Assembly (NCBI GenBank): GCA_020891255.1
Contig: BQFW01000001.1
Span: 1 to 64,000 of the forward strand
DNA from: Entomortierella parvispora E1425
Lineage: Eukaryota; Fungi; Mortierellomycota
DNA length: 64,000 nt
Reading direction: 5' to 3'
The translations under genes were made by a program, and so were the position numbers. This document shows positions 10,230 through 28,966 of this stretch, in pieces. The notes under the pieces were generated by a model. It made no database searches. It saw nothing but the letters and a program-made list of their open reading frames with translations, and was not told the origin of the DNA. The number at the start of each line of letters is the position of its first letter. Positions within the stretch are counted from its first letter, which is position 1.

Positions 10230-11030
10230 GAGTCGAGTTGGATGCAATAGTCGAGTTGGATGCATTGGGTCAGTTGAGATGGCGGCTGCAAAAGGTGGAA
10301 GATGTGAGTTCGATTTATGAGAGGAGAAGGATGCACGAGATGAGATGCAACTGAGAAGAGAGATGCAACAGAGAAGAGAGATGCAACATGGAAGAGAGAG
10401 ATGCAACAGAGAAGAGAGATGCAACAGAGAAGAGAGATGCAAGAGAGGAGAAAGATCCAAAAAAGAAGACGGATGCAAGACACGGGAGGACAGGGTAAGG
10501 ATGCGAGAGTCGAGGAGAAAGGAAGGACGCAGGAATCGAGACGAGAGAGACGAGAGAGACGAGAGGAAAGGGATGCAAAAAACGAGACAAGAGAGAGAGG
10601 GATGCAGGAGACAAGAGAGAGGGATGCAAGAATTGTGGAATGCAGGAGACGAGAAGGTCGAAGGATGCAAGAGACAAGATGAATGCAAGAGACAAGATGA
10701 ATGCAAGAGACAAGATGAATGTAAGAGACGAGATGGATGCAAGAGGCCATGTGGATGCAAGAGGCCATGTGGATGCAAGAGGCCATGTGGATGCAAGAGG
10801 CCATGTGGATGCAAGAGGCCATGTGGATGCAAGGGACGAGATGGATGCAAGGGACGGGATGAATGCAAGGGACGAGATGAATGCAAGGGACGAGATGAAT
10901 GCAAGGGACGAGATGAATGCAAGAGACGGGATGAATGCAAGGGACGAGATGAATGCAAGAGACGAGATGAATGCAAGAGACGAGATGAATGCAAGAGACG
11001 AGATGGATGCAAGGAGGATGGGTTGAGAGA
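10230..11030. repeat. Composite minisatellite built on a 'gatgcaa(g/c)' core (18-19-bp units)
   Basis: Units include gagatgcaacagagaagag, gacaagatgaatgcaaga, ggccatgtggatgcaaga (x5) and gagatgaatgcaag(g/a)gac. A related short array is at ~22680-22760. Confidence 0.95.
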
Positions 11031-14000
11031 TGGCAAGAGAAGGGAGGGAGACAGACGGGAGAAAAGACAGAAGTTCACGGATGCTCCAACCAACAAACAA
11101 CAACCGCCCGTTTCTCCCCCCAGGCTGCACTCGCCCCATCCTAAAGAACAGTGGTCTTGGGACGGAAGAGAACAGGAGGAGGAGGGACAAGAGGAAAGAG
11201 AAGAAGAGGGACAAGTGGGAAGAGAAGAGGAGGGACAAGAGGAAAGAGAAGAGGAGGGACAAGTAGGAAGAGAAGAAGAGGGGCAAGAGGTAAACACAGG
11301 ACAAGAGCTCAGACAAGAGGAGCGAGGAGAAAGAAAGAAGAGACGGAAGGGGGACATGGACGGGCGTCCGTCCGTCTGGCGGCCCGCCCGCAGCGAGGAT
11401 CCAACAACAGCTGAGACAAAAAGGCAAAGTTCAGGAACGATCGATCCGTCTCGTCCATGCGGAGGATCCCTGATTTTTAGTTGGTTTTTTTTTGTTGGGC
11501 CAACAGCAGCGTCTTCATACCAAGACTTCATATCATTCATACTTTGAGTGGACAGGCGTCACCTGTGGGGATGCAGACAGGGTTGTCACAATCCCACAGA
11601 GGAAGAGCGAGAAGGGTATGAGGGGAGATATCAAGCAGACATGTGCAAGAGAGAAGGAAAAAAAAACAGGGAGGGAAGAAAAGAAACGATCAAGACTGAC
11701 AAACAAGAGGGAAGAGAAGAAAAAAGACGATCAAGAAGGAAGAGAAGAAAGGAAAGAAGGGAGAGAGAAGAAGATAGGGACAGTTGAACGCAACAGACGA
11801 AAAAGCAATGCAAGAGAGGAAGACCAGACAAGTTCTAGTGTAAAGGAGAAGACATCAGCGAAGGAAAACAAGAGAAAGACTGACGAACAAGGAGGAAGAA
11901 AACAGAGGAGCAAGAAAGAAGAGAAGAGAGGGAAGAGAGGATAGGAACAAGAAGGAAGGGAAGGGAAGAGAAGAGAGGGCAAGAGAAGAGAGGGCAAGAG
12001 AAGAGAGGGCAAGAGAAGAGAGGGCAAGAGAGAGAGAAGAGGAGAGAGGGAGGAGAAGAGGGGGAAAAACCGACAACAGCTGTGTTCTGCAGGAACGATG
12101 ATCCGTCCATGCGGGACAAGACAAACATAAAAAGCTTTTTTTTTTTTTTGCGCCAGCAGCCAAGTGCTCCTCCTCCTCCTTCTCCTCCTCCTCCTCCTCC
12201 TCCTCCCTGTTGGGTGGGCAAGTGTGCCGCACTGTGGGAATGCAGAAAGGGTTGTCTCAAGCAGTCGAGATCATGAGCAGAGTATTTGTCAACGCGACAG
12301 TTTTTTGCCCCGAATGCATCAAAGGGAGGGATGGAGGTACGTTTGGGTCTTCGGTAGCAGCGATTCAGTAGAGGGAACCTGCTGAAGGTGGATGAGTGCT
12401 GGGGCCATGTCTGCCTTGCCACCTTGCCCTTTCGCGGCCAGAAGACTGTTCCACCAAATGTGCCACCAAGGTGCCTTGTGGACTTGAGTTGAGCTTTTGA
12501 CTGCCAGGATCCTTTTTGGTGTGATCCGTCTTCACTCCAAAAAAAATCTGTCAATCCGAGCCGCTGCATGTCGTTGCATGTTGTTGCATCTCGACTTCAT
12601 CCCAGTCCCTCCATTAAAGCTGATTTTCTTTGGTCGGCCCCCTCTCGCTCGCTCAGCCTAAAACCCACTTGTGGATCGTGGTCCTTAGGCGTGGGGTGGA
12701 CTTTGTTACCGCTGTTCCAGTCGTCTCCCATGGTTGCTGGCTGTATCCCATCCAGGAAGCCACTGCATGCCGTAGCACTTCAATTCCATTCTGGAACCCT
12801 GCATCAAGTTGAACTGCTCGATCCTCCAATTCGTTCCGGGACTGAGGGGAAGAAGTTTCTCTTGCAACTCGCCCTCCTGTGGGTCTTGAGTCCAGGAGGC
12901 GAGTGGTGGCCCTGTTGCTACCTACGTCCTATTTTGCATGTCGCTTCCTGTCAACCTCCTGTTCCTGGGGCTGGCCCACTGTTAATTGGGCCTATTGCAG
13001 GCGTGTGATGTATCCGAAGATGAACACAATGTTGAATCGGATAGAAGTCGAATGGAATAAAAGTCGATGCCAGTCGACATATTATTATTGAATGCGAGGC
13101 CGATTCTGGATGCCCCAATTCTGGATCGAATCTCAAATCTCGAATATTTGATGTGGACTCAGACATATTTTTTAAATGCGCTAGAACCAATCTGTAGAAA
13201 AGACCGCTGCTGGAGACCCTGGATGCACGGCGTGAAAGCAAAAAATTTACATGCGTTAGAACCAAATCTCCGGGTTCCTGATGGCATCATCAGATAGCTG
13301 CAACTGAGGACTATTATGAGCCAAGGTACCAGGGTCTCATGACCTGACCTTGCCACCGAAAAAGTGCATTAAATGACCCTAAAACATCAAGTTGACCCCA
13401 CGCCACCACCCTTGCAGGGGTTTAGCACAGGGGGCCCCCTTTGATGTCATGACCGGATTCCGACGAGGAGGAGGCTGGACAGGACCAGGGTCTTGGGTTC
13501 CGCTCAGTGTGGAGCAGGAGCAAGTGCCCAACATGGGCTATATTTATCTGGGCTATATTTTGCCATGGGTGTAGCTGGCACAGGAAAGTCGGAGTGTTGA
13601 AGGAGCTGTGTCGTCAATCCTCGGGCACGGGCAACAGGAACAACAGACAAGGGACAAGCAACAGAGGCAGAGATCGACAACAGCGGCGACAAACGAGCCC
13701 GATCGGTCCAAGCGGACAACAAAAAAAAAACGATGACAGCTCCTTTTTTTTTGGCGGTAGCCGCTGCAAAGTGCGCATCCCAAGATCAGATCACCCTCCT
13801 CTAGGAAGTGGACATGCACAACCTGAGGTGAAGCAAGCAGGGCTGCCACGAAGGGAGGAGAGGAAGAGAGAGGGAAGAGGATTCAGGGGCAATCTGCAGC
13901 GGGAGGGAAAAAAACAAGGACAGAGACATGGGCAAGGCCTGTCCATTGTTCATTTTTCTCCTTCCTCGACCGTTCCATCTCATCTCCTACCTCGCTCTTC

Positions 14001-14816: not shown

Positions 14817-17800
14817 TTATCCAGTGTGGGGCTTTTGCTCTGCTCTATCAGACAAGTCAGACTGGTCGCTGACTCGCTTAGTTCCCTTGACACTGTCGAG
14901 CAGATCAACCACTCCCCTTGGCACAAAGTTTCCCATATTACTCCCATCAATGATCATAAGAAGCTGCTTCAATGGTTCATCAACTTCCGCAAATCCATGA
15001 CGGTCATTAGCTCCAGTCACAGGCTCCGAATCCCAAATGCTGTCGCCATCCCACCCCATTCGAGGTGTCTTTTTGATTGTGGGGTGGACGTAGAGCAAGC
15101 TGAGATACTTTCCACCAGGGCAGTACGCGGCCAGGTTCGGTAGATGGTCTTTGATCCTACTCTCATGCACATTCAGCCGCGCATCCTCCACATCTCCTGG
15201 ATAGATGCCCTTGAGGAGCTTCGTTTGGACAAATACGGGGTAAAGCTCCTTATTGATTCGCAGAACAAAGACGATGTCAGGTCCAGATGGAGACAGTCCT
15301 GGGTAGTAAAATGGTGGTACCTCGTAATCACCCTTTCTCGAGCCATTTCTGTAGTGCGCCTCCATAAAATCGTACATGGTTAGCGTGTTATTGTGCCGAG
15401 CTCTCCACTCATAACCTTCCCATCCGATGATCGTTGCTCGGTGCGTAAACAGATGCTTAGGGAATGTGACAGGCTCAAAAGTTGGGATAGGGACCTTGGG
15501 CGGCTTGAGGTGCACAGCAGGCTTAGGGATCGAGAATAGTTCATGTTTGAGTCGTTTGTTATGGAAGGCGTAGATCAGGTCCAAGGGTGTATGTCGCTCA
15601 AAGATTTTCCCTTCTGGAGAAGGATCCTGCAAGTCTCGGTACTGTTCTCTGAAGAAATGGTAAAACCCTTCGTCTTCTCTTTGGATAAAGTTGTAGGCAG
15701 CCCTGAACACGAATGGCTCGTCAATAACTGTGTCGACTCTCCTCCCCATAGCAGCTCGGTCAGCAGTAACGCGAAGACGGGCAAAGGCGCTTTCGACCAT
15801 AATAGGCTCCTCTCCTTGCAAGCTCCAAGGCAACCCTAGAGACGCTCGAAAAACGACAGTCTGTCTGAGAACATGCATGATATCAACAGCATCTTTGAAT
15901 TTGGCCGGATCCTTGGAGACCTTATCGAGCATCCTCTTGATATCAGAACAAAGGTTCCCGCGCACTGGGAAATGTTCAGGGTAACTTGTCATTGACTGCA
16001 CTCTTCGTTCGATAGCCTCTCTCCAGTATGATATGGATCCGTTGGCGATAATTTCCTCGATTGTGGAGATGATTGGACGGAACCTGCCCCGAAGCCTGAA
16101 AAACAATTCTTGAACGGCTTTTTCGGGTATCAGCTCGTAAAGCACTGCTTTGTCATCCTCACTCATTGTATCCCCGAGATTATTGATGTACGTTGCCACT
16201 TGCTCCACAGTTTCCCAGCCTGGGAAGTCAACAATCCGACGATTAACCTGTTCCCAGCTGCTTCCAATGCCTCCAGAGCTCAGCAGAACTTCGAGTTCGT
16301 CTGGGCCAATGCCCGTGCCACAGGTCACCACGCAGTAGTCTTGCTCGCTTGCAGAAATACTCCTAAGCCCACGTATGATAGGAGAGAGGACCGATCTAGG
16401 ATCCCCGGAGTCTGCACGCGACACGAAATAACCCCTCCCATGATCGCTCAAGGTCTGCGCTTCATCGAGGACGACGAGAAGCTTATTCGGCAAAGAATCG
16501 GAAGAGAACGAAGAGATATGGTCTTGAGCCTGACGAAATCGATCTTGCAAAAGGATCTTCAAGATCGAAAGAGACGGTGTCCGATCGTGATAGGCGCGTA
16601 GTATAGCCCTGAAAACCATGTCAAAGACATCCGGTACAGCGGTGTCAAAGGCTCCCGGGCATACTTGGAATAACATCCAACGGTCACAGGCAAATATGTC
16701 ATGGTGGCCGAGACTTAGACAGTGTTGCAGGACCATGAGACGCGAAATAAGAAGACAGCAGGTCATCGCCTGAATATTGAGACCATTCCGCACCTTATCG
16801 GACGACAGATACCGCTCCGGCATTTCCAGTGCTGACTCAAACATAGTGGTAATATCCTTGGAACCTCGATCCGCCTGACTGCCGTTCATGTAGAACCCCC
16901 ATGTCTGTGCAAGCATTTCGACGACAGCCCGGGTTTTTCCGCAGCCACTCACACCAAAGAATGTCATCATATCGTTGTTTTGAAACTTTTTGATACTGTC
17001 GAGCGCTGTCACAGAAGGGGGCGTTGTTGAATCCGTCGTTTGGTGTGGTCGCGTTGGATGCAGGAGGTATAAGGCTGGCCGAGACGACTGATGGGAAAAG
17101 GAACTCGATCGCAGCCATGCCTTTGGTAAGCCCTTAACACAGCAATCAGCCTCAGGAAGAGAGAGCTCGCCTTGCACAAACGAGCGAGTAAAGTTTGATA
17201 CTGCAGTTCCTGGCTGAAAGAATTCATCCTTGATCCTCTCTAATTGTGTATTAACTAAAGCATTATTGATAATAAGTATATTAGTGGCCAACCCAACGCC
17301 GAGCGGACACAGGACTTGACTAATCATGCGCTTATCTTACAAGCTTCTATCCCTTGTTCAAGCGACGGAGGTGACGGTGTTCGAGCTGGGACAGGAGCTT
17401 GAACTTTGTCGGAGTGAGTAAACGTGGAAACAAAGTTAGAGTCAATTGGCCACAGTCGTTCTTGTAGACTGCGATGAGAAACAAGGCTGCATTACCTGGC
17501 CGCTGGACAATGATGCTGATTGTTTTCTTGGGTGGTTGCGCCTTAAATTCATCGGAGATGTCGTCGGCCGGGTCGAGTTCTGTCGCAGAGCCCCATTCAT
17601 TTAGGACGATTGGCTTGCGCTCTTTCAGTGGGGCCAAGGGGATCGAGACAGACCAAAGGGTGAGCATGTTTGCATCGACACCGGCCAAAGCGATGGATTT
17701 CGCCTTCTTGATCTCATTCTTGAGTATGCCTATGGACGCGCTGGAATTAATCTCGACAGGAAACGGGGTCGATTCGGTTTCGACAACGCAGAGCAGAGTA

Positions 17801-17817
17801 AGGAGTTTGTTGGTCAT
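14817..17817 (-). CDS. Crinkler (CRN)-family protein: N-terminal ubiquitin-like CR-NTD + P-loop NTPase + restriction-endonuclease-like C-terminus (~940 aa)
   Basis: Exons 17817-17496, 17403-17341 and 17254-14817, with GT-AG introns in consistent phase (total 2823 nt). The N-terminus MTNKLLTLLCVVETESTPFPVEI..LKNEIK..LTLWSVSIP..KKTISIIVQRP is typical of CRN N-terminal domains. Walker A GVSGCGKT, Walker B VVLDEAQ, and GPDIVF..VFVQTK as a PD-(D/E)xK-like motif. Confidence 0.88.
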
Positions 17818-20200
17818 GGTGCTGCGAAGCATAGGGTGAGGTGGTGATGTTTGGAGAAGAAGGTGAGAGTTGAAGGAAGGAAAAGGTGGACGAGGAAAGA
17901 AAGATGATGATGCCAAGGAAGGGCATAAAAGGAGAGGCGATGAAGGGCATGGGAGTGGTGGCAAAGAGAGCCAAATGGAAGTGGCACAATTGAATCCATT
18001 TCCTTCCGTCACCGATGCTGGAGGACACCCCCCCCCCCTCGGAAACTGTGGTCGTTTAACCGTTCTCGGGGAAGAGCTCTTGACGTAGAACGAAGGGCTC
18101 CTGGAATTGGTTGCGGCTACATGTGATCTGATTCGAGGATACATGGACTCAGGCTACCTATGTAGTAAGTGATCTATGGTTTGGGTGGTCATGTTCATGT
18201 TCATGGAAGCAGACGCTTTTTTTTTTTTTTTGGAGAACGGATCCTGAATACTTTCGGCTCGTACCAGCGTCGCACACAGACAACATGTTTCCAGGAGAGT
18301 GCTCGTAGGTGGAGCAAACTTGAAAGGGATACTCCATTACCAGGCCATCCTTCAACGGCGCGATACACCTACAAGAGATGTCCCTCGCAAATCAGATATC
18401 GTTGGATTTGGAAGCACGATACGGACTTGCAGACTCGAAGTCATGAGCATGGGACTGATTATGGATGTTCATTTCTCTCCTGATTTTGGGAACGACGGAG
18501 CTATTGTGCCTTCGTCCTTTCCTAAGGTTGGCGAGTCTCGCTCCAATCTTACTTTTATTTTATTGCGCACAGATCAAGGAACTGGTGCACCAGACCTCAT
18601 GTTTGCATTGTTCAGCCAGGCTTTGAAGCAAACTGTATGCACTAATTCAAGGAAGGCATGCTAAAGAGTAAGCGACAAATTAAACGGCCATAGACCTCGA
18701 CATGCATGAGGCTGAAAATCACGGTGTCAGCTGCATTGTGTCGCACTCAGATGATAGAAGAGCTAGACTGCGCTCAACGTTCCTAGGACCTAACTAATTC
18801 AGCGTCACTTGAGTTTTCTCGACGTAATAATAAACGCTGCACCTTGCCATTGGACTGTAAACCAACACCAAGTTTTCAAGCCTAGTGACCGAGAAGGCAG
18901 AAGAACGAATCGCCAGTTGGGACATATTTTGGGGATAGGGGAAAGGAGGGAGAAGTTCCATCCAAGCACAAACAACAAAAGGGGGCTGCACTCACCCCAC
19001 CAAAAGAACAATGGTCTTGACAGGTGGAAAGACAAGAGGAGGGACACGAGGAGGGACACGAGGAAGGACAAGAAGCAAGCGAAGAAGGGGACAAGACGCA
19101 AAAGAAGAGGGACATGAAGGAAGAGAAGAGACGAGACGACAAAGGGAAGAGGAAGATGAATGGTTCAATAAGAGGGACATGGGAGCATTCCCTTCCGGCT
19201 GGCGACAGCGGCGGATCCGACAACAATCAGGACAAGCGACAGGAACGATCAGCAGTCCATACAGGGAGGGACTCCTCGTCCACGAGGGTTCAAAAAAAAC
19301 CAAAAACGGGGGGGTTTTTTTTTGTGCCAGCAGCCACAAAGCGCTCATCCCAAGAGTTCAGCATCAAGGACTTCAGATCGTTTCCCCTTGGGTAGTCATG
19401 CACAACCTGTGGGGATGCAAACAGGCTTGCCATAGAGGAAGAGCGAGAAGGACAAGAGGGAAGAGATCAAACAGACATGTGCAAGAGAGAAGACAAGAGC
19501 AACAACGCACGTTTCCCCCCCTCGACAATGGTCTTCGGATGATTGTCGAGAGGGAAGATAGGGACGAGAGGGAGAAAAGAAAGGGGCCAGAGGGAAGAGA
19601 AGGAAAGAGCGGATCAAGAAGGAAGATACGAGAAGGACAAGAAGGAAAGAAGAAATAGTCATGAGGGAAAAGAAAAGAGGGTCATGAGGGAAGGGAAAGA
19701 GGGACAAGAGTGGGGAGATCAAAGAGACAAGTTCAAAAGAGAAAACAAGAGGCAAGGAGGAGAAGAAACGATTAAAACTACGAGCAAGAAGGACGAGAAA
19801 TGAAAAGAGGGTCAAGAGGGAAGGGAATAGAGCAGAGAGGGAAGGATGCGAAAGAGAGTTTAGTCCCTGCAGGGGGGATTTTTTTTTGGTGCCAGCTGCA
19901 GGAAAGTGCGCCTCCATGTCTACTTCCTTGGATGGACATGTGCAGCCTGATGTAAACACGCTAGCGTTGCCACACCAGGTGGAGTACCGTAACCTCATTC
20001 TCCCAAGTCCCTTCGTTTTGTTACGCTTTGGCAGAGAGGACTGGACTCAAGCTCCAGCGCGTCAAAAGCGCGATTTATTTTTTCTTCTTGGAGGTTTCTG
20101 CGCGAGTTTCTTCAACTGCCAGCAGAATTTGTTTCCAGCAGGTCATCAACAACCAAGGTCGGAGAGAAGCAAGCAGGGAAACATGATCCAACTATCCACA

Positions 20201-22294
20201 CTACGCAGTTCGTGAGAATTTGAATCTTCTCAGCACAGTGTCGTCAACGCCACGGAGTCTCTGGGTTGCGTCCTCATAGCTGTCAAACCTCCTCTTGGTT
20301 CTTTCGTTGATGATCAAATCAGCCTTCGTTTCATCAATGCCACGTATTCGCTTGAGGTCTTTGCGTTGTGCTCGATTAATATCGAGGGCGCCAGTTGTAG
20401 CGAAAACGAACGCTCTGCCGGCAAATGGTCCAAAGTAGAGTGCCCAATTTGATCCGTCTACAATTCCCGAAAGTGGTGGAAGATCAACTTCAAGCTGATC
20501 TTTGGAGGTGAACATTATGAAGAAATCCCTGTCGGATGCAGCTTTTTTCCTTTCCGCTTGGTAATCGATCCCGCCGCCGTCGGCGATCAGCTTGCATTGG
20601 TGGACTTCCATGCGGAATCCTGTGTGGAATCCCTGTGTATCCAGTCCAGTGAAACTATCGCCGTAGGGTGCTGACGGTGCATTGATAATACAGTGTTCAA
20701 ACCGACGGATACTCAGCGTCTGGTGTTCACAGTGAATGGTCAAAGTCATTCGTTCATAGATCGTGGACTTGGTATCGACCTGTTTAGACGAGACGGCTAC
20801 CTTTAGGTGATGATTTTTAAAATGGATGTCACCACGCAAACGTGCTCCTGTGTGGATTGCCGAGATCGTTGTGGGCTCGCCATCCCCCAGCACCTGTGAC
20901 TTGAGGCAGCGGAAGGTTGCAAGGAAATGCTCAAAGTGCTGCCAAAATTGAGCTCCTGGTGGCGATCCTGGATCCGTCTTTGACTTGAGATCTGAGTAGT
21001 CGCAGAAACGCCAGTTGATAAGGGGAGGAACCACGTCTTCTGTTGGCTGGTATGAAAAGAGCCACACCCAGATGTAAGGCGCGGTAAGATATCCTCCTGA
21101 ACCGAGACCATGTGGCTGCTCATACCGGATTAATCCCGGAGTGGCAAGCTCGCCAGGCAATTTGCCACTTCCTAAAAGCGGTTGGTCGGGGTCCAAGTAA
21201 GCTCGCGTAAGTATCGCTCGTGCCATGGCTTGAACTGTCGAAGGCGGAATTGAAAGTGCCTCCGAGTAAAGATCTTTAAGCTTGTGGTATAGACTGTTCA
21301 TCAACGAATCGACATTAAAATCCCTGCCTGCTGCCTCAATGACCTGCTGCAAAGCCTCGAGGGCTCTTCCATGGCCTCCACAGTCGGTCACAAGCACCTT
21401 GGTAATATGATCATCTTCATCAAAGACCGGTGTAGCTGAACCATTTTGATAGATAAACGGAGGTTTCAATGAGGCGACAGGCAAGACGACACGGTTCCAA
21501 TGAGTGAATCCCGAAGCTTTATCGACCAGAGTGGTAATAGTGCCGGTGCAGCATGCCATCAGAAACACGTCCTCAAACGAAAGAGCGACGATGTTTGTCA
21601 AAGCTCGATAGAAGGCTGAGTCTTTGCTGTGGCCATCCTTGGGGTGTGTCATGAAGGATTGCAATCCATCCACCACTAGAATGACAGTAGCTGATCTTAA
21701 ATCTCGACCAGTCCCCCTGGCGACAAGATCCAGGACGTCCATCGGGTGCACCTCCTTGTAGTCCTGCATGACGTCACGGACTCTCTTGTCAGGTAGAAGT
21801 TGCAAGAGCATCCGGGTACCTATGGCTTCGATTGGATAGACCTCCTTCTCCAAAGGACTGGCGCGATTTTCAAGGCTGACATGGAACACCCAGGCGTGCT
21901 CGATCTTGCTTCTCAGCTCCTGATCTTCTTCTTCGGTGAGGCATAATGTAGCAGATTGGTGAAACTCCTGCGCGTTGCGAGACTTTCCTGTTCCTGCTCC
22001 GCAAAGGAATAGGTATAACGGGATCGTCGATTTATCGCGCAGTCCTTTAAAAAAGTCACTGTAATGATCCTTGATCGATCTTCGCAATGTGCCATACAGC
22101 TTCGGATCAGGCTGGTAAGTCCAGCTCATGCCTGTCGTTCTGAGTAGAGGCGGTGGATTTCGGTAGGGCAATCCTAATAGCAAATATACAAATAGATATA
22201 TTTAAATAAAAGATAGGAACTAAACTTCTTCCTGCAGACACGAACGTATTGGATACGTACCTCTGGGGAAAGCTTGAGATATAGCCTGTTTCAT
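20201..22294 (-). CDS. CRN-like protein lacking the CR-NTD: P-loop NTPase + REase-like + C-terminal helix-hairpin-helix (~668 aa)
   Basis: Exons 22294-22261 (MKQAISQAFPR) and 22173-20201 join in phase. Walker A LCGAGTGKS, Walker B ILVVDG, a PYGD..EVHQCK nuclease-like motif, and a ComEA-type HhH tail LDINRAQRKDLKRIRGIDETKADLII. May be a pseudogene if the internal ATG is not used. Confidence 0.75.
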
Positions 22295-22453
22295 GATGGA
22301 TGCCACAACTAAACGATGATTAAGGTTAACTAATGAGCATGGTTCGCGAGCAAGAGCGGGGTCAGGAACTGTGTCGAAGAACGACGTGAAAAGAGACAAG
22401 ATTGGAACAATGGACAGTCTCACAAGGATACATAATGATAAGCAAGGCTTTAC

Positions 22454-22630
22454 CTGGTTGCTAAACAATGATGCCGATGGTCTTTTTGTTGAGGGTTGAA
22501 GGAAGGAAGGGAAATGTTGGACGAAGAAAGAAAGGATGAAGCGGCCACAGCAGGGGTCTAAAAGCAGAAGGCGATGGAGGACGTGGGAGCGGTGGCAAAA
22601 AAAAGGGGGTGGTGGCAAAATGGATTCAAG
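22454..22630 (-). pseudogene. Relic first exon of the second CRN gene (leader + last codons of the deleted CR-NTD)
   Basis: 22491-22630 aligns by eye with the CRN1 leader 17866-17999, then reads LNKKTIGIIV*QP|gtaaag versus CRN1 PPKKTISIIVQRP|gtaatg. TAG is at 22463-22461. Confidence 0.8.
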
Positions 22631-25600
22631 GAACGAGATGAATTCAAGAGACGAGACTGAGACGAGAGAGAGATGGAGGTGACTGGATGGATGCAAGAGA
22701 CGAAAGGGATGCAAGAGACGAGAGGAATGCAAGAGAAGAGAGGGATGCAAGAGACGAGATGAGTTGGAATGAGTTGAAAGATGGAGGGAGACAGACTGGC
22801 AACGCGCGTTTTTCCCCCTGGACTCTTTTTTTTTTTTTTTTTTTTTAGCCAAAACGAGGCTGTACTCGCCTCATCCAAAAGAACAGTGGTCTCGGGATGG
22901 AAGAGAGGGACGAGCAAGAGACAAGAGGGAAGGGAAGAGACGCACGAAAGGGATCAATATGGGAGTCTGGGCCTTTCCGTCAGGAGACAGCGGATCCGAC
23001 AACAGAGACAAACAAGAAGACAGGCGATCAGGAACTTTCATCCCAAGATTTCATATCATACGCCCCCCTGTGGGGTTAAGAGAAAAGAAGACATCAGCGA
23101 AGGAAAAGAAGAGAAGAAATGAACAAGGAAGAAAACAGAAGAGCAAGAAAGAACAAAAGAGAGGGAAGAGTGGGAAGAGAGGGAAGAGAGGAGCTGAACA
23201 AGACAGAAGAATAGACCAACAAGAGAGAAGGGAGGAAGTTTCGAGAAGAGAGACAACCAAGAAAAGAGACGAACAAGAGGAAAAAGAAGGGACGATCATC
23301 AAGAGGTAAGAAAGGAGAAAGACCGATCAGTCCAGGCGAAAAACAGGGAGCAGGGTCCTTGTTTTTTTTTTTTTTTTTTTTTTGCAAGCAGCTGTAAACT
23401 GCCAAGAATGACTCCTCCTGATGGACATGTCCACCCTGATGCGGAGAGAGTTGCCACAGTCGGAAACGCAGCATCTTCCAGGTCTCTTCGTTTGTTGCGC
23501 CGCAGGGAAAAGGCTGGATCAACGCGTCAGAACATGAGGATAGGGGTCGACGTGATTTTTTTTTTGGAAGTCTCCTCTGCTGCAAGAGCTCAAGGGCATT
23601 TGTTTCCAGCAAGTCAAGGTAGAGTTAGCACCCGTCAGTCCGGCCCCGAGCGAATGTTGTAAACGGAAGAGAAAGGAGGGATGGAAGAGACAAGAGATAT
23701 GGAGCAGACGAGATGACAAGCCCAAGGCGGCTGGAAACAAAGAGAGATGGAGGGAAGTGGAGGGAAGTGGAGAGAAAAGAGACTAGCTCCATCCCAACCG
23801 CAACAAACAACAACGCACGTTTCTCTCCCTCGACAATGGTCTTTGTATGGCAGTCGAGAGGCGAAGGGAATAGAAGACAGGGACAAGAGGGAGAGAAGAT
23901 AGGGACAAGAGGGAAGAGAAGAAAAGAGAGGCATACGAGGGAAAAGAAGAGACGAAGAAAAGAGAAGAGAAGAGACGATCTAGAGAGAAAGGAAGAGAAA
24001 AGAGGGGCAAGAGGGGGGAGAGGAGCATGAGGGAAGGACGTGAAAGAGAATGCCAAAAAACACGGCTGCAGGGTGCCTTTTTTTAGTTTTTTTTTTTTTT
24101 TGGTGCCAGCAGCAAAGTGTGCCTCCACTCGCCCCATCCAAAAGAACAAGAGTCTTGGGAGGAAAGAGAAGGAATAGCGAGAAGGAGTGCAAGAAAGAAG
24201 AGCGAGGAGAAAAAGAGGAGACAACAAGAGGGAAGAGAGAAATGGAAGAGGACAGGAGGAAAGAGAAGAGACGGTCAAGAGGGCGGAGAAGAGGAGGGAC
24301 AAGAGGCAAGGGACAAGAGGGAGGAAAAGAGAGGGACGATCAAGAGAGAAGAGACGACCAAGAGGGAAGAGACGGACAAGAGAGAAGACAAGAGGGAGAA
24401 AAGAAGAAAGAAGGGTCGAAGGCCTGGTCGTCCAGAGCCAACAGCGGATTCGAGGAACGATCGATCACTGCGTGCAGGGACTCCTCGCCCATGCGGGGTA
24501 AATAAAACACGATTTTTTTTTGCCCCAATGGCCACAACGCACTCATCCCAAGATTTCAGCAGCAAGGACTTCAGATCTTTCCTCCCTTGGTGGTCATGCA
24601 CAACCTATGGGTGATGCAGACAGGGTTGTCATAGAGAAGGGTGAGAAGGACAAAAGGGGAGAGATCAAACAGACAAGTGCAAGAGAGAAGACAACAGAGA
24701 AGGAAGAAAAGAAACGATCAAGACTGACGGTCAAGAGGAAAGAGAAGAAAGGAAAGAGGGGAGGGAAATGAAGAGAGGAACAGTTGAATAGACCACAACA
24801 GGGGGAGACCAGACAAGTTCAAGAGAAAAGAAAACATCAGCGAGGGAAAAAAAGAGAAAGACTAATGAGCAAGAAAGAAGAGAAGAGAGGGAGAGAAAAA
24901 AGGAAGAGAGAAAAAAGGAGACGAGCAAGAGGGAAGAGAGGGAGTTCGGAAAGAGAAAAAACCTAGAGAGAAAAGAGGAGATCACAAAGAGGAAAGAGAA
25001 GAAAAGAGGCGATCATCAGGAGGAAGAGAAGAGAGAGAAAGAACGATCAGTCCATGCTACAACAAAAAACAGGGGTAGGGTCCTTTCTTTTTCGCCTGCA
25101 GCTGTAAAGTGTTCCTCCACTCTGATACGGAGAGAGTTGCCACAGTCGGCAGCGCAACATCTTCCAGTTCTCCTCGTGTTGCGCCGCAGGGAGTGACTGG
25201 ATCAACGTCGCTTGCGGTGTCTCTTCATCTCACGACACGCCCAACTAGTTGCTTGGTTTGAACCCTTGGGCATGTCGTTCGGGACCTCGTCTTTCCAAGC
25301 GCGAGGCATCCCTTCGGAAATAAACTGCCTCACCGTGCGACTCTACACGTCATTGGCAGGATGCTTTGTCAGTGAATCCAAGCGGGCAGCTCTTGCAAAA
25401 ACAAGTCGTCTAGCTGGAGGAAACAAGTTTTTCATTTGACTGTCCAGTAAGTCCGACAAGCTAGGTTCAGGTCCGTGTGAGTCCATTTGACCCAAAAGTG
25501 CTCCAACAGATCCTCGGCTCCAATTGATCTCAAAATTCTTCTGTTTTCTGCTCCCCTGTGAACCTTGGATCCATCTGTCTGTGATCCAATAAAAGGGCAT

Positions 25601-28676: not shown

Positions 28677-28966
28677 ACTTCAAAATAAAACACACTGCCT
28701 CCATCACCAAACAAAATCGATTTGACATGCAGATTTATGAATTGGAAGCTCGGAGCACGAAAACTACGGATGCGCTATGCCAGGCCTGCGTTTGATGATT
28801 CACTGGATTGTACAAAGTTGCACGAGGTATGAGGATCAAGCAAACAAACCAGAAGGGCCCGGCGAAGGGACAGGCAAAAATGTAGTGTTGACTGTGGCCA
28901 TGAGGAATTCGACTGTAAAGTTGGTTACGCCAGTTTGTCTTGACACTCTTGAGGACCGTACCGCAA

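Follow-up and report, generated by a model that had tools for sequence, protein, structure and literature searches.

How can two neighbouring genes of one family begin alike and end in unrelated proteins, and how does one of them come to stand without the header that names the family? The question is raised by CRN1 and CRN2, two Crinkler (CRN) genes in the first 64,000 bases of contig 1 (BQFW01000001.1) of the Entomortierella parvispora E1425 assembly (38.9 Mb, 20 contigs); that whole stretch is referred to below as the window. CRN1 is a complete three-exon Crinkler gene, and CRN2 lies on the same strand. E. parvispora is a soil saprotroph hosting an endobacterium, and its genome is a Nanopore assembly with Illumina polishing at high coverage and AUGUSTUS annotation guided by transcript hints (PMC8759367). 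The explanation that we regard as probable is that the two genes follow the same plan with different payloads, that CRN2 has lost its header by a single 334-nt deletion and is drifting toward a pseudogene, and that the deletion is one outcome of module recombination throughout the family.

A shared plan

Read in the direction of transcription (every feature of both genes is on the minus strand), CRN1 opens with a conserved non-coding leader at 17864-17996. This promoter/5' untranslated region (UTR) block, assigned below to cassette family A, was delimited by alignment to the leader of CRN2 and also aligns with the leaders at no fewer than nine other loci (72-82% identity). Exon 1 (17496-17832, with candidate start codons at 17832 and 17817) encodes the ubiquitin-like Crinkler header, which matches profile positions 1-106 of the Pfam Crinkler family PF20147 (E 1.7e-21; 77.4 bits, with the cut-off at 24.6). 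The header ends with ISIIVQRP, a hydrophobic-V-x-x-P junction motif, followed by one further base, that is, in phase 1. Intron 1 (17404-17495, phase 1, donor GT at 17495-17494) has a conserved start, GTAATGCAGCC, and a conserved end, CGACAAAG. Exon 2 (17341-17403), read from the sequence, is a symmetric phase 1-1 linker of 63 nt, the first 14 of which are still common to the C13 gene discussed below. Intron 2 (17255-17340, phase 1) joins the reading frame to an 836-amino-acid (aa) open reading frame (ORF), in which exon 3 (14817-17254) constitutes the payload.

CRN2, the annotated gene EMPS_00006, has these parts in the same order, with a large piece missing. Its exons and those of CRN1 were searched one at a time, the public protein P0001 (EMPS_00006) served as a check of the CRN2 gene model, and the significance of alignments was judged by local score against 500 dinucleotide-preserving shuffles. 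The CRN1 leader (17996-17864) aligns with 22627-22490 at CRN2 with a score of 57; the shuffles gave 13.8 +/- 2.4 and a maximum of 24. A second block of homology spans the end of the header and the beginning of intron 1 (17530-17474 with 22488-22435; score 32, shuffles 9.5 +/- 1.5, maximum 16), and a weaker similarity runs on to 17382 in CRN1 and 22347 in CRN2, toward the intron 1 acceptor. The 5' cassette that an earlier note on this DNA had seen in both genes thus survives formal alignment. What CRN2 retains of the header reads NKKTIGIIV-stop-QP, then G|GT, so that its phase-1 junction (donor 22453) is exactly that of CRN1 (donor 17495), as the same note had supposed.

The deletion at CRN2

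CRN1 is not the nearest relative of the CRN2 cassette. The nearest is the cassette at C14:2215262 (designated L023), whose leader is 92-95% identical to that of CRN2 over ~170 nt, against only ~78% for CRN1; the stub and intron start of CRN2 are 80-89% identical to those of L023. Measured against L023, the CRN2 leader (22489-22672) is truncated at its 3' end, and the deletion junction falls at 22487-22489 (22488±1). The gap between leader and header tail amounts to 334 nt by comparison with L023, 333 nt with CRN1 and 327 nt with the C13 paralogue; the earlier note had proposed ~340 nt. The interval absent relative to L023 extends from -372 to -39, counted from the donor, and takes in the final 47 leader nucleotides, the start codon and 96 of the 108 header codons. 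A 'caac' microhomology had been suggested at the junction; the comparison with L023 leaves only 1 nt in common there, and the suggestion has to be dropped.

Downstream of the junction stands a 12-codon header remnant (22454-22487), one codon shorter than the corresponding part of L023 and interrupted by an in-frame TAG (22463-22461) where intact copies have a sense codon. Then follow a remnant of the cassette intron 1 (22369-22453, donor GT at 22453-22452), which ends in the family acceptor, CGACACAG, at 22369; an ancestral exon 2 of 108 nt (22261-22368, phase 1-1), delimited by alignment with L004, L012, L013 and L023; intron 2 (22174-22260, phase 1); and exon 3 (20201-22173), an uninterrupted ORF of 656 codons. 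The acceptor had earlier been placed at 22309. That site is a usable alternative in the sense that it, too, keeps phase 1; the acceptor homologous to that of the family (as in L004, L012, L013 and L023) is the AG at 22370-22369, which gives exon 2 its 108 nt.

The public protein starts MKQAISQAFPRG|LPY (...AFPRG|LPY at the splice junction), which confirms intron 2 and places the annotated start at the ATG at 22294-22292, within ancestral exon 2; this is precisely the codon at which a restart of translation had been predicted. The CRN2 payload is 100% identical to that of this hypothetical protein. The public protein starts in the linker exon, and the CRN2 product lacks the Crinkler header domain. 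CRN2 is a member of the Crinkler family by descent and not by architecture.

That a header once stood here is indicated by relatives with the same payload. The C13 paralogue EMPS_09927 (769 aa) carries a payload of the CRN2 type (63% aa identity) behind an intact cassette: leader, Crinkler header with the Pfam domain, phase-1 intron, an exon 2 that reads VQAPIAFQKQTVFQAFPD, and a second phase-1 intron. PF20147 is likewise carried by the nearest orthologues of CRN2, in Podila horticola (78% identity), Mortierella claussenii, Mortierella sp. AM989, Lunasporangiospora and Linnemannia zychae. Since paralogue and orthologues join the same payload to an intact header, CRN2 is rightly read as having lost its own by deletion, and it is confirmed, as read in the assembly, that CRN2 lost its start codon and most of its header through the 334-nt deletion. 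A header exon farther upstream, as an alternative source of an N-terminus for CRN2, was considered and rejected: a six-frame Pfam search of the window finds a Crinkler header in CRN1 only (the contig's next one lies at 213 kb), and tblastn of 29 header peptides against the rest of the window gives a best E of 0.07. At 28694-28873 on the minus strand, 6 kb upstream of CRN2, tblastn weakly matches the header type of L024/L028/L029 (its residues 1-61; 27% identity, E ~1); the match is not significant and might at most mark a decayed header.

The course of events is as follows. CRN2 was built on the plan of CRN1, a family cassette having been joined to a different payload. One deletion of 334 nt took away the leader's 3' end together with the start codon and 96 of the 108 header codons, and left the rest of the leader, the 12-codon stub that now has a stop, both splice signals of intron 1 and the whole of the payload. 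The only route to a CRN2 protein would now be initiation at ATG 22294, in the former linker exon, and the product would be devoid of the header that is thought to mediate delivery.

Two payloads

A BLASTP comparison of the exon-3 proteins of CRN1 and CRN2 finds no significant similarity (E 0.45), which bears out the contention that the payloads differ, and each has its own paralogue set in the genome. Searches of both payload sequences against the PDB gave nothing useful beyond a helix-hairpin-helix (HhH) match.

The CRN2 payload was modelled with AlphaFold (AF2) on 39 homologues (pLDDT 83.5), and three parts can be distinguished. The first ~400 residues yield Foldseek matches to the nucleotide-binding domains of ORC/Cdc6, CED-4/Apaf-1, TnsC and NLR proteins (E 1.6e-6 and weaker, probability 1.0), with a conserved Walker A motif, GAGTGKS; Walker B and D...E..Q.K motifs are also present. 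In the model, then, the N-terminal part of the payload is an AAA+/STAND-like P-loop NTPase fold. The last ~60 residues are an (HhH)2 domain: the structural match to ComEA has Z 9.4 and a root-mean-square deviation of 1.4 A over 59 residues, and a profile search of the PDB finds an (HhH)2 region (E 2.7e-6) and ComEA (E 5e-5); Pfam HHH_3, HHH_6 and DUF655 match below their cut-offs. Between the two lies a beta-rich domain, for which the best structural matches are all PD-(D/E)xK nucleases (Mus81, XPF, Card1, MspJI, Can2, AF1548), if weak ones (Foldseek E >=0.026, Z <=4.1). Its D, E, Q and K are conserved in the family alignment, and the modelled domain is probably a nuclease of the restriction endonuclease (REase) fold.

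The CRN1 payload can be described in less detail. It has a Walker A motif (P-loop), Pfam AAA_22 matches it weakly (E 0.0012, short of the curated cut-off), and its C-terminus appears, on a reading by eye, to hold a PD...QxK-like nuclease motif. Its nearest look-alikes in a protein language model (for 14817-17252, minus strand) are large clusters of header-less hypothetical proteins of Basidiomycota (score 0.99); a Mucoromycota Crinkler cluster is also among the nearest. This type of payload may circulate without a Crinkler header in other fungi.

Decay or a new function

The earlier note had envisaged a protein without its N-terminal domain, able to restart at an internal ATG. The start codon of such a protein is the annotated one; what has become doubtful is its function. 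The nearest copy of the CRN2 payload (EMPS_10577, at C14:1906660-1908781, L065:3161-5282; 92.6% nucleotide and 87% aa identity) is homologous from ~22346 onward, inside ancestral exon 2, and has no leader or header upstream. It has suffered a frameshift near codon 560, and is annotated as a protein of 590 aa with an aberrant C-terminus. Over the 558 codons that precede the frameshift, comparison of the two copies gives rates of synonymous (dS) and non-synonymous (dN) substitution of 0.079 and 0.061, and thus a ratio (omega) of 0.77. The underlying counts, 75 non-synonymous and 29 synonymous changes, are indistinguishable from omega 1 (chi-square ~1.4) and depart from omega 0.37 (chi-square ~12; both by hand arithmetic). 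Payloads of intact pairs in the family have omega 0.13-0.37, including 0.37 at a dS of 0.18 and 0.25 at a dS of 0.22. When aa changes are polarised with eight orthologues, 20 are derived in CRN2 and 14 in the frameshifted copy; at sites that are invariant in the outgroup the numbers are 8 and 3. The ancestral start of CRN2 is gone, with the ATG and 96 codons deleted and a stop in the stub, as in a pseudogene; the remaining coding sequence, exon 3 with its 656 codons, bears no disabling lesion. Function of the header-less protein is doubtful because the coding sequence evolves almost neutrally, and the same near-neutral rate suggests drift toward a pseudogene rather than the birth of a new header-less enzyme. 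Relaxed constraint and early decay of the payload are most likely.

Several observations weigh against this account. The 656-codon ORF is intact and keeps its Walker A, Walker B and D...E..Q.K motifs, and in simulations of ~61 neutral substitutions it stays free of stops in just 9% of cases; the gene may therefore still be under some constraint, or may have lost its function very recently. Young duplicates in this family tend to have a raised omega (the headers of L028 and L030, for example, give 0.68 at a dS of 0.079). ATG 22294 is conserved in the C14 copy, and the sole indel nearby is a multiple of 3. As to the deletion, it may predate or postdate the joining of the cassette to the CRN2 payload, and it is known from a Nanopore assembly polished with Illumina reads.

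The intact ORF with its motifs, the low chance of its staying free of stops and the conserved ATG would fit a CRN2 that is functional without its header: transcribed from the leader, started at ATG 22294, and acting inside the cell as an undelivered NTPase-nuclease-HhH protein. It might, for instance, serve in self-defence, or regulate or neutralise its headed paralogues in the manner of an antidote. ATG 22294 has an A at -3, the public annotation models exactly this header-less protein, and header-less relatives are annotated in Linnemannia gamsii and Benniella. Those annotations may, however, be errors of the gene models, and the Benniella protein (P0006) still opens with the header-tail motif. 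With splicing at the family acceptor of intron 1, the 5' UTR would hold a short upstream ORF (ATG ~22340). Against a working protein there also stand an omega well above the family baseline, more derived changes than in a sister copy that is itself frameshifted, and the eight of them at sites that orthologues hold invariant. We consider a functional CRN2 unlikely, although it is by some distance the most serious of the alternatives.

Much less credence can be given to the idea that the 334-nt gap was introduced in assembly or polishing, or reflects a somatic or strain-specific variant, and that the real gene has a full header. The many similar copies of the cassette could mislead a Nanopore assembly. 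Yet the Illumina polishing was done at high coverage, a clean loss of 334 nt with unique flanks is atypical of a collapse error, and the stub bears independent damage, an in-frame stop and a missing codon, that fits an old lesion. That the likeness of the two upstream regions is nothing but CT-rich low complexity or a dispersed repeat, and that CRN2 never had a header, is a reading to be rejected: the leader is pyrimidine-rich and both genes lie in purine/pyrimidine-skewed repeat scaffolds that share rearranged modules, but the leader score is 18 standard deviations above the dinucleotide shuffles, the order from leader through header tail, donor and intron 1 to acceptor is collinear with five intact genes and the alignments with L023 and the family agree, the remnant keeps the header-end motif in the right phase, and the same payload is headed in the paralogue and in orthologues.

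Modules and breakpoints in the Crinkler family

Crinkler headers that exceed the Pfam cut-off number at least 70 in this genome. The best 30 of these loci were surveyed with 1.5-kb flanks, payload types being assigned from the first 1.1-1.4 kb. In 28 of the 30, a phase-1 GT donor lies 7-22 nt past the end of the Pfam domain (one of the others is in phase 0 and one is truncated); the hydrophobic-V-x-x-P motif at the header end is likewise found in 28 of the 30 copies. Leaders, header exons, the first 350 nt of the introns and payloads were clustered separately, and the resulting partitions differ. Leader family A (CRN1, CRN2, L004, L012, L016 and L023) is connected with three payload types. Leader family B (L007-9, L024 and L027-30) has two header types and five payload types, that of CRN2 among them. 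The proposal of a reusable cassette with swappable payload exons, which had been made from two genes, is thus borne out at the scale of the survey.

Breakpoints can be located by comparing loci in pairs. Between L017 and L018, identity is 96% from -1821 up to +63 of intron 1, where all relationship ends. Homology ends at +53 to +85 of the same intron in the pairs L007/L008, L024/L028, L024/L030 and L027/L007. Synonymous divergence is discordant to match: between L017 and L018, dS is 0.014 for the header and 1.5 for the payload. The pair L007 (C1:270697) and L024 (C9:58008) presents the opposite case, with a header dS of 1.46 and a payload dS of 0.18; their leaders and everything from -26 onward are 86% identical, and their header cores are unrelated. 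The header core must therefore itself be replaceable between conserved flanks. Taken together, the alignments indicate that leader, header core and payload are re-assorted as separate modules at phase-1 introns, with breakpoints 53-85 nt into intron 1.

The segment replaced between L007 and L024 (-340 to -26) nearly equals the gap in CRN2 (-372 to -39). This coincidence suggests that leader and header tail may serve as recombination arms and that the CRN2 deletion may be a failed or unequal exchange. More generally, shared homology could be supplied by the conserved leader, by the header tail and by the opening ~50-60 nt of intron 1, and the deletion would then be one outcome of recombination among leader, header core and payload modules.

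Exon shuffling in its classical form follows Patthy's rule: phase 1-1 modules are the ones that move, mostly among metazoan extracellular proteins. Fungi are not usually named among the organisms in which exon shuffling is frequent. The Crinkler family shows what one would look for, that is, flanking introns of equal phase (1-1), symmetric exons such as the linker, breakpoints within an intron (in five pairs) and modules that are reused in different genes. It differs from the classical case in that the modules stay inside a single fungal gene family, where paralogues exchange them by homology, and do not spread among unrelated genes.

Some further features of the cassettes were noted in passing. 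About half of the copies have an intron 1 that starts GTAATGCA(G/A)C, a conservation well beyond the normal 5' splice consensus; these first 11 nt are found in L007, L008, L009, L024, L027, L030, L001, L004, L011-L013, L017 and L018. The intron 1 of cassette B looks like patchwork, with a segment of ~52 nt followed by an L017-like intron start. Three family A leaders (L012, L004 and L016) have a TGACGTCA/TGACGTAA motif, resembling CRE/bZIP sites, ~220 nt upstream of the header ATG; it is absent from the CRN1 leader, and CRN2 and L023 have CT-rich repeats instead. In-frame stops interrupt the headers at C12:1501714 (1501714-1502016), C13:2409683, C1:1534819 and C9:1361337, and other headers are truncated, so that damaged Crinkler copies are common in this genome.

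Repeats occupy much of the ground around the two genes. AG-rich modules, rearranged and 70-84% identical, lie upstream of both (18970-19800 and 22850-24890), and an 18-nt tandem repeat occurs at 10.3-11.1 kb (10320-11070) as well as directly upstream of the CRN2 leader (22630-22810). A telomere repeat was looked for at the start of the window, and none was found there.

The exon plan in other genera

Annotated orthologues from other genera were mapped onto their own DNA; the gene models are those of other groups and count as support and not as proof. In Benniella the order is header, phase-1 intron, a 45-nt exon 2 (phase 1-1), phase-1 intron and payload. Calcarisporiella thermophila has the same plan with an exon 2 of 51 nt, also phase 1-1, and in Diversispora epigaea both phase-1 junctions can be read in the DNA at the ends of the tblastn matches. 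In Linnemannia zychae and Podila horticola, header and payload are modelled with just one intron between them, in phase 1. The Benniella and Linnemannia orthologues also have the intron start GTAATGCA (L071:1341 and L072:1317), and a sequence search finds numerous orthologues of the CRN2 payload in Glomeromycotina. The occurrence of the three-exon plan in Mortierellomycotina, Glomeromycotina and Calcarisporiella suggests that it is old.

Relation to Crinklers described elsewhere

In oomycetes, CRN proteins are described as modular, with a variable C-terminus behind their N-terminus, and recombination is proposed to have a hot spot at the HVLVxxP motif (Haas et al. 2009; Shen et al. 2013; both as presented in the review PMC5289972); Helitrons and motif-directed recombination have been put forward as the mechanism (PMC5289972). 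The E. parvispora family is like them in its header end (hydrophobic-V-x-x-P, here IIVQRP), its many unrelated payloads, its duplication and fragment recombination, and its many damaged copies. Oomycete CRN genes are mostly intron-less, with 0-1 introns (PMC11064341), whereas the junction here is a phase-1 intron with breakpoints that can be mapped inside it; the conserved non-coding leader constitutes a third module, and the organism is a saprotrophic fungus of the Mortierellaceae that is not known as a pathogen.

Zhang et al. 2016 redefined the group as CR (Crinkler-RHS-type) proteins, which combine a ubiquitin-like (Ubl) header with enzymatic toxin domains, NTPase, REase and HhH among them (as cited in PMC5289972 and PMC6131194). 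CRN1 conforms in its Pfam Crinkler header, and CRN2 in its AAA+/STAND-like NTPase and (HhH)2 domains and in a middle domain that matches PD-(D/E)xK nucleases weakly; it departs from the definition in being now without a header.

The CRN-like proteins of Rhizophagus irregularis, a member of the same phylum, offer a further comparison: their headers have LFLAK-like and HVLVxxP-like motifs, their payloads are annotated as REase, NTPase4 or HhH, and most are without a signal peptide (PMC6131194). One of them, RiCRN1, is expressed in symbiosis and has been functionally tested (PMC6131194); the E. parvispora genes, in contrast, are known from sequence alone. That paper (PMC6131194) contains no analysis of introns or their phase, and the word intron is absent from the review of CRN proteins (PMC5289972). 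No paper linking the Crinkler junction to an intron phase was found in the literature searched, an absence that holds for that body only.

What the two genes mean for the family

A more general proposition can be put forward, which in our judgement could equally well prove right or wrong. The header/payload junction of Mucoromycota Crinklers, which corresponds to the oomycete HVLVxxP hot spot, would be an ancient phase-1 intron. The family would diversify by true exon shuffling of leader, header core and payload, with the leader, the tail of the header and some 50-60 nt at the beginning of intron 1 as homology arms, and CRN2 would be a by-product, its core lost between two arms.

The modularity of CRN proteins and their recombination at the header end have been known since the Phytophthora genomes, and the physical mechanism has stayed unclear. 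With a junction that is an intron, module borders that are all in phase 1, and recent exchanges mapped to within a few tens of bases, CRN modularity becomes testable at the level of sequence. The header-less CRN2 amounts to a natural experiment on what becomes of a payload after its delivery domain is lost, and the apparent answer is relaxed constraint. If the general proposition is true, few cases of exon shuffling still under way in fungi would be as clear as that of the Crinklers.

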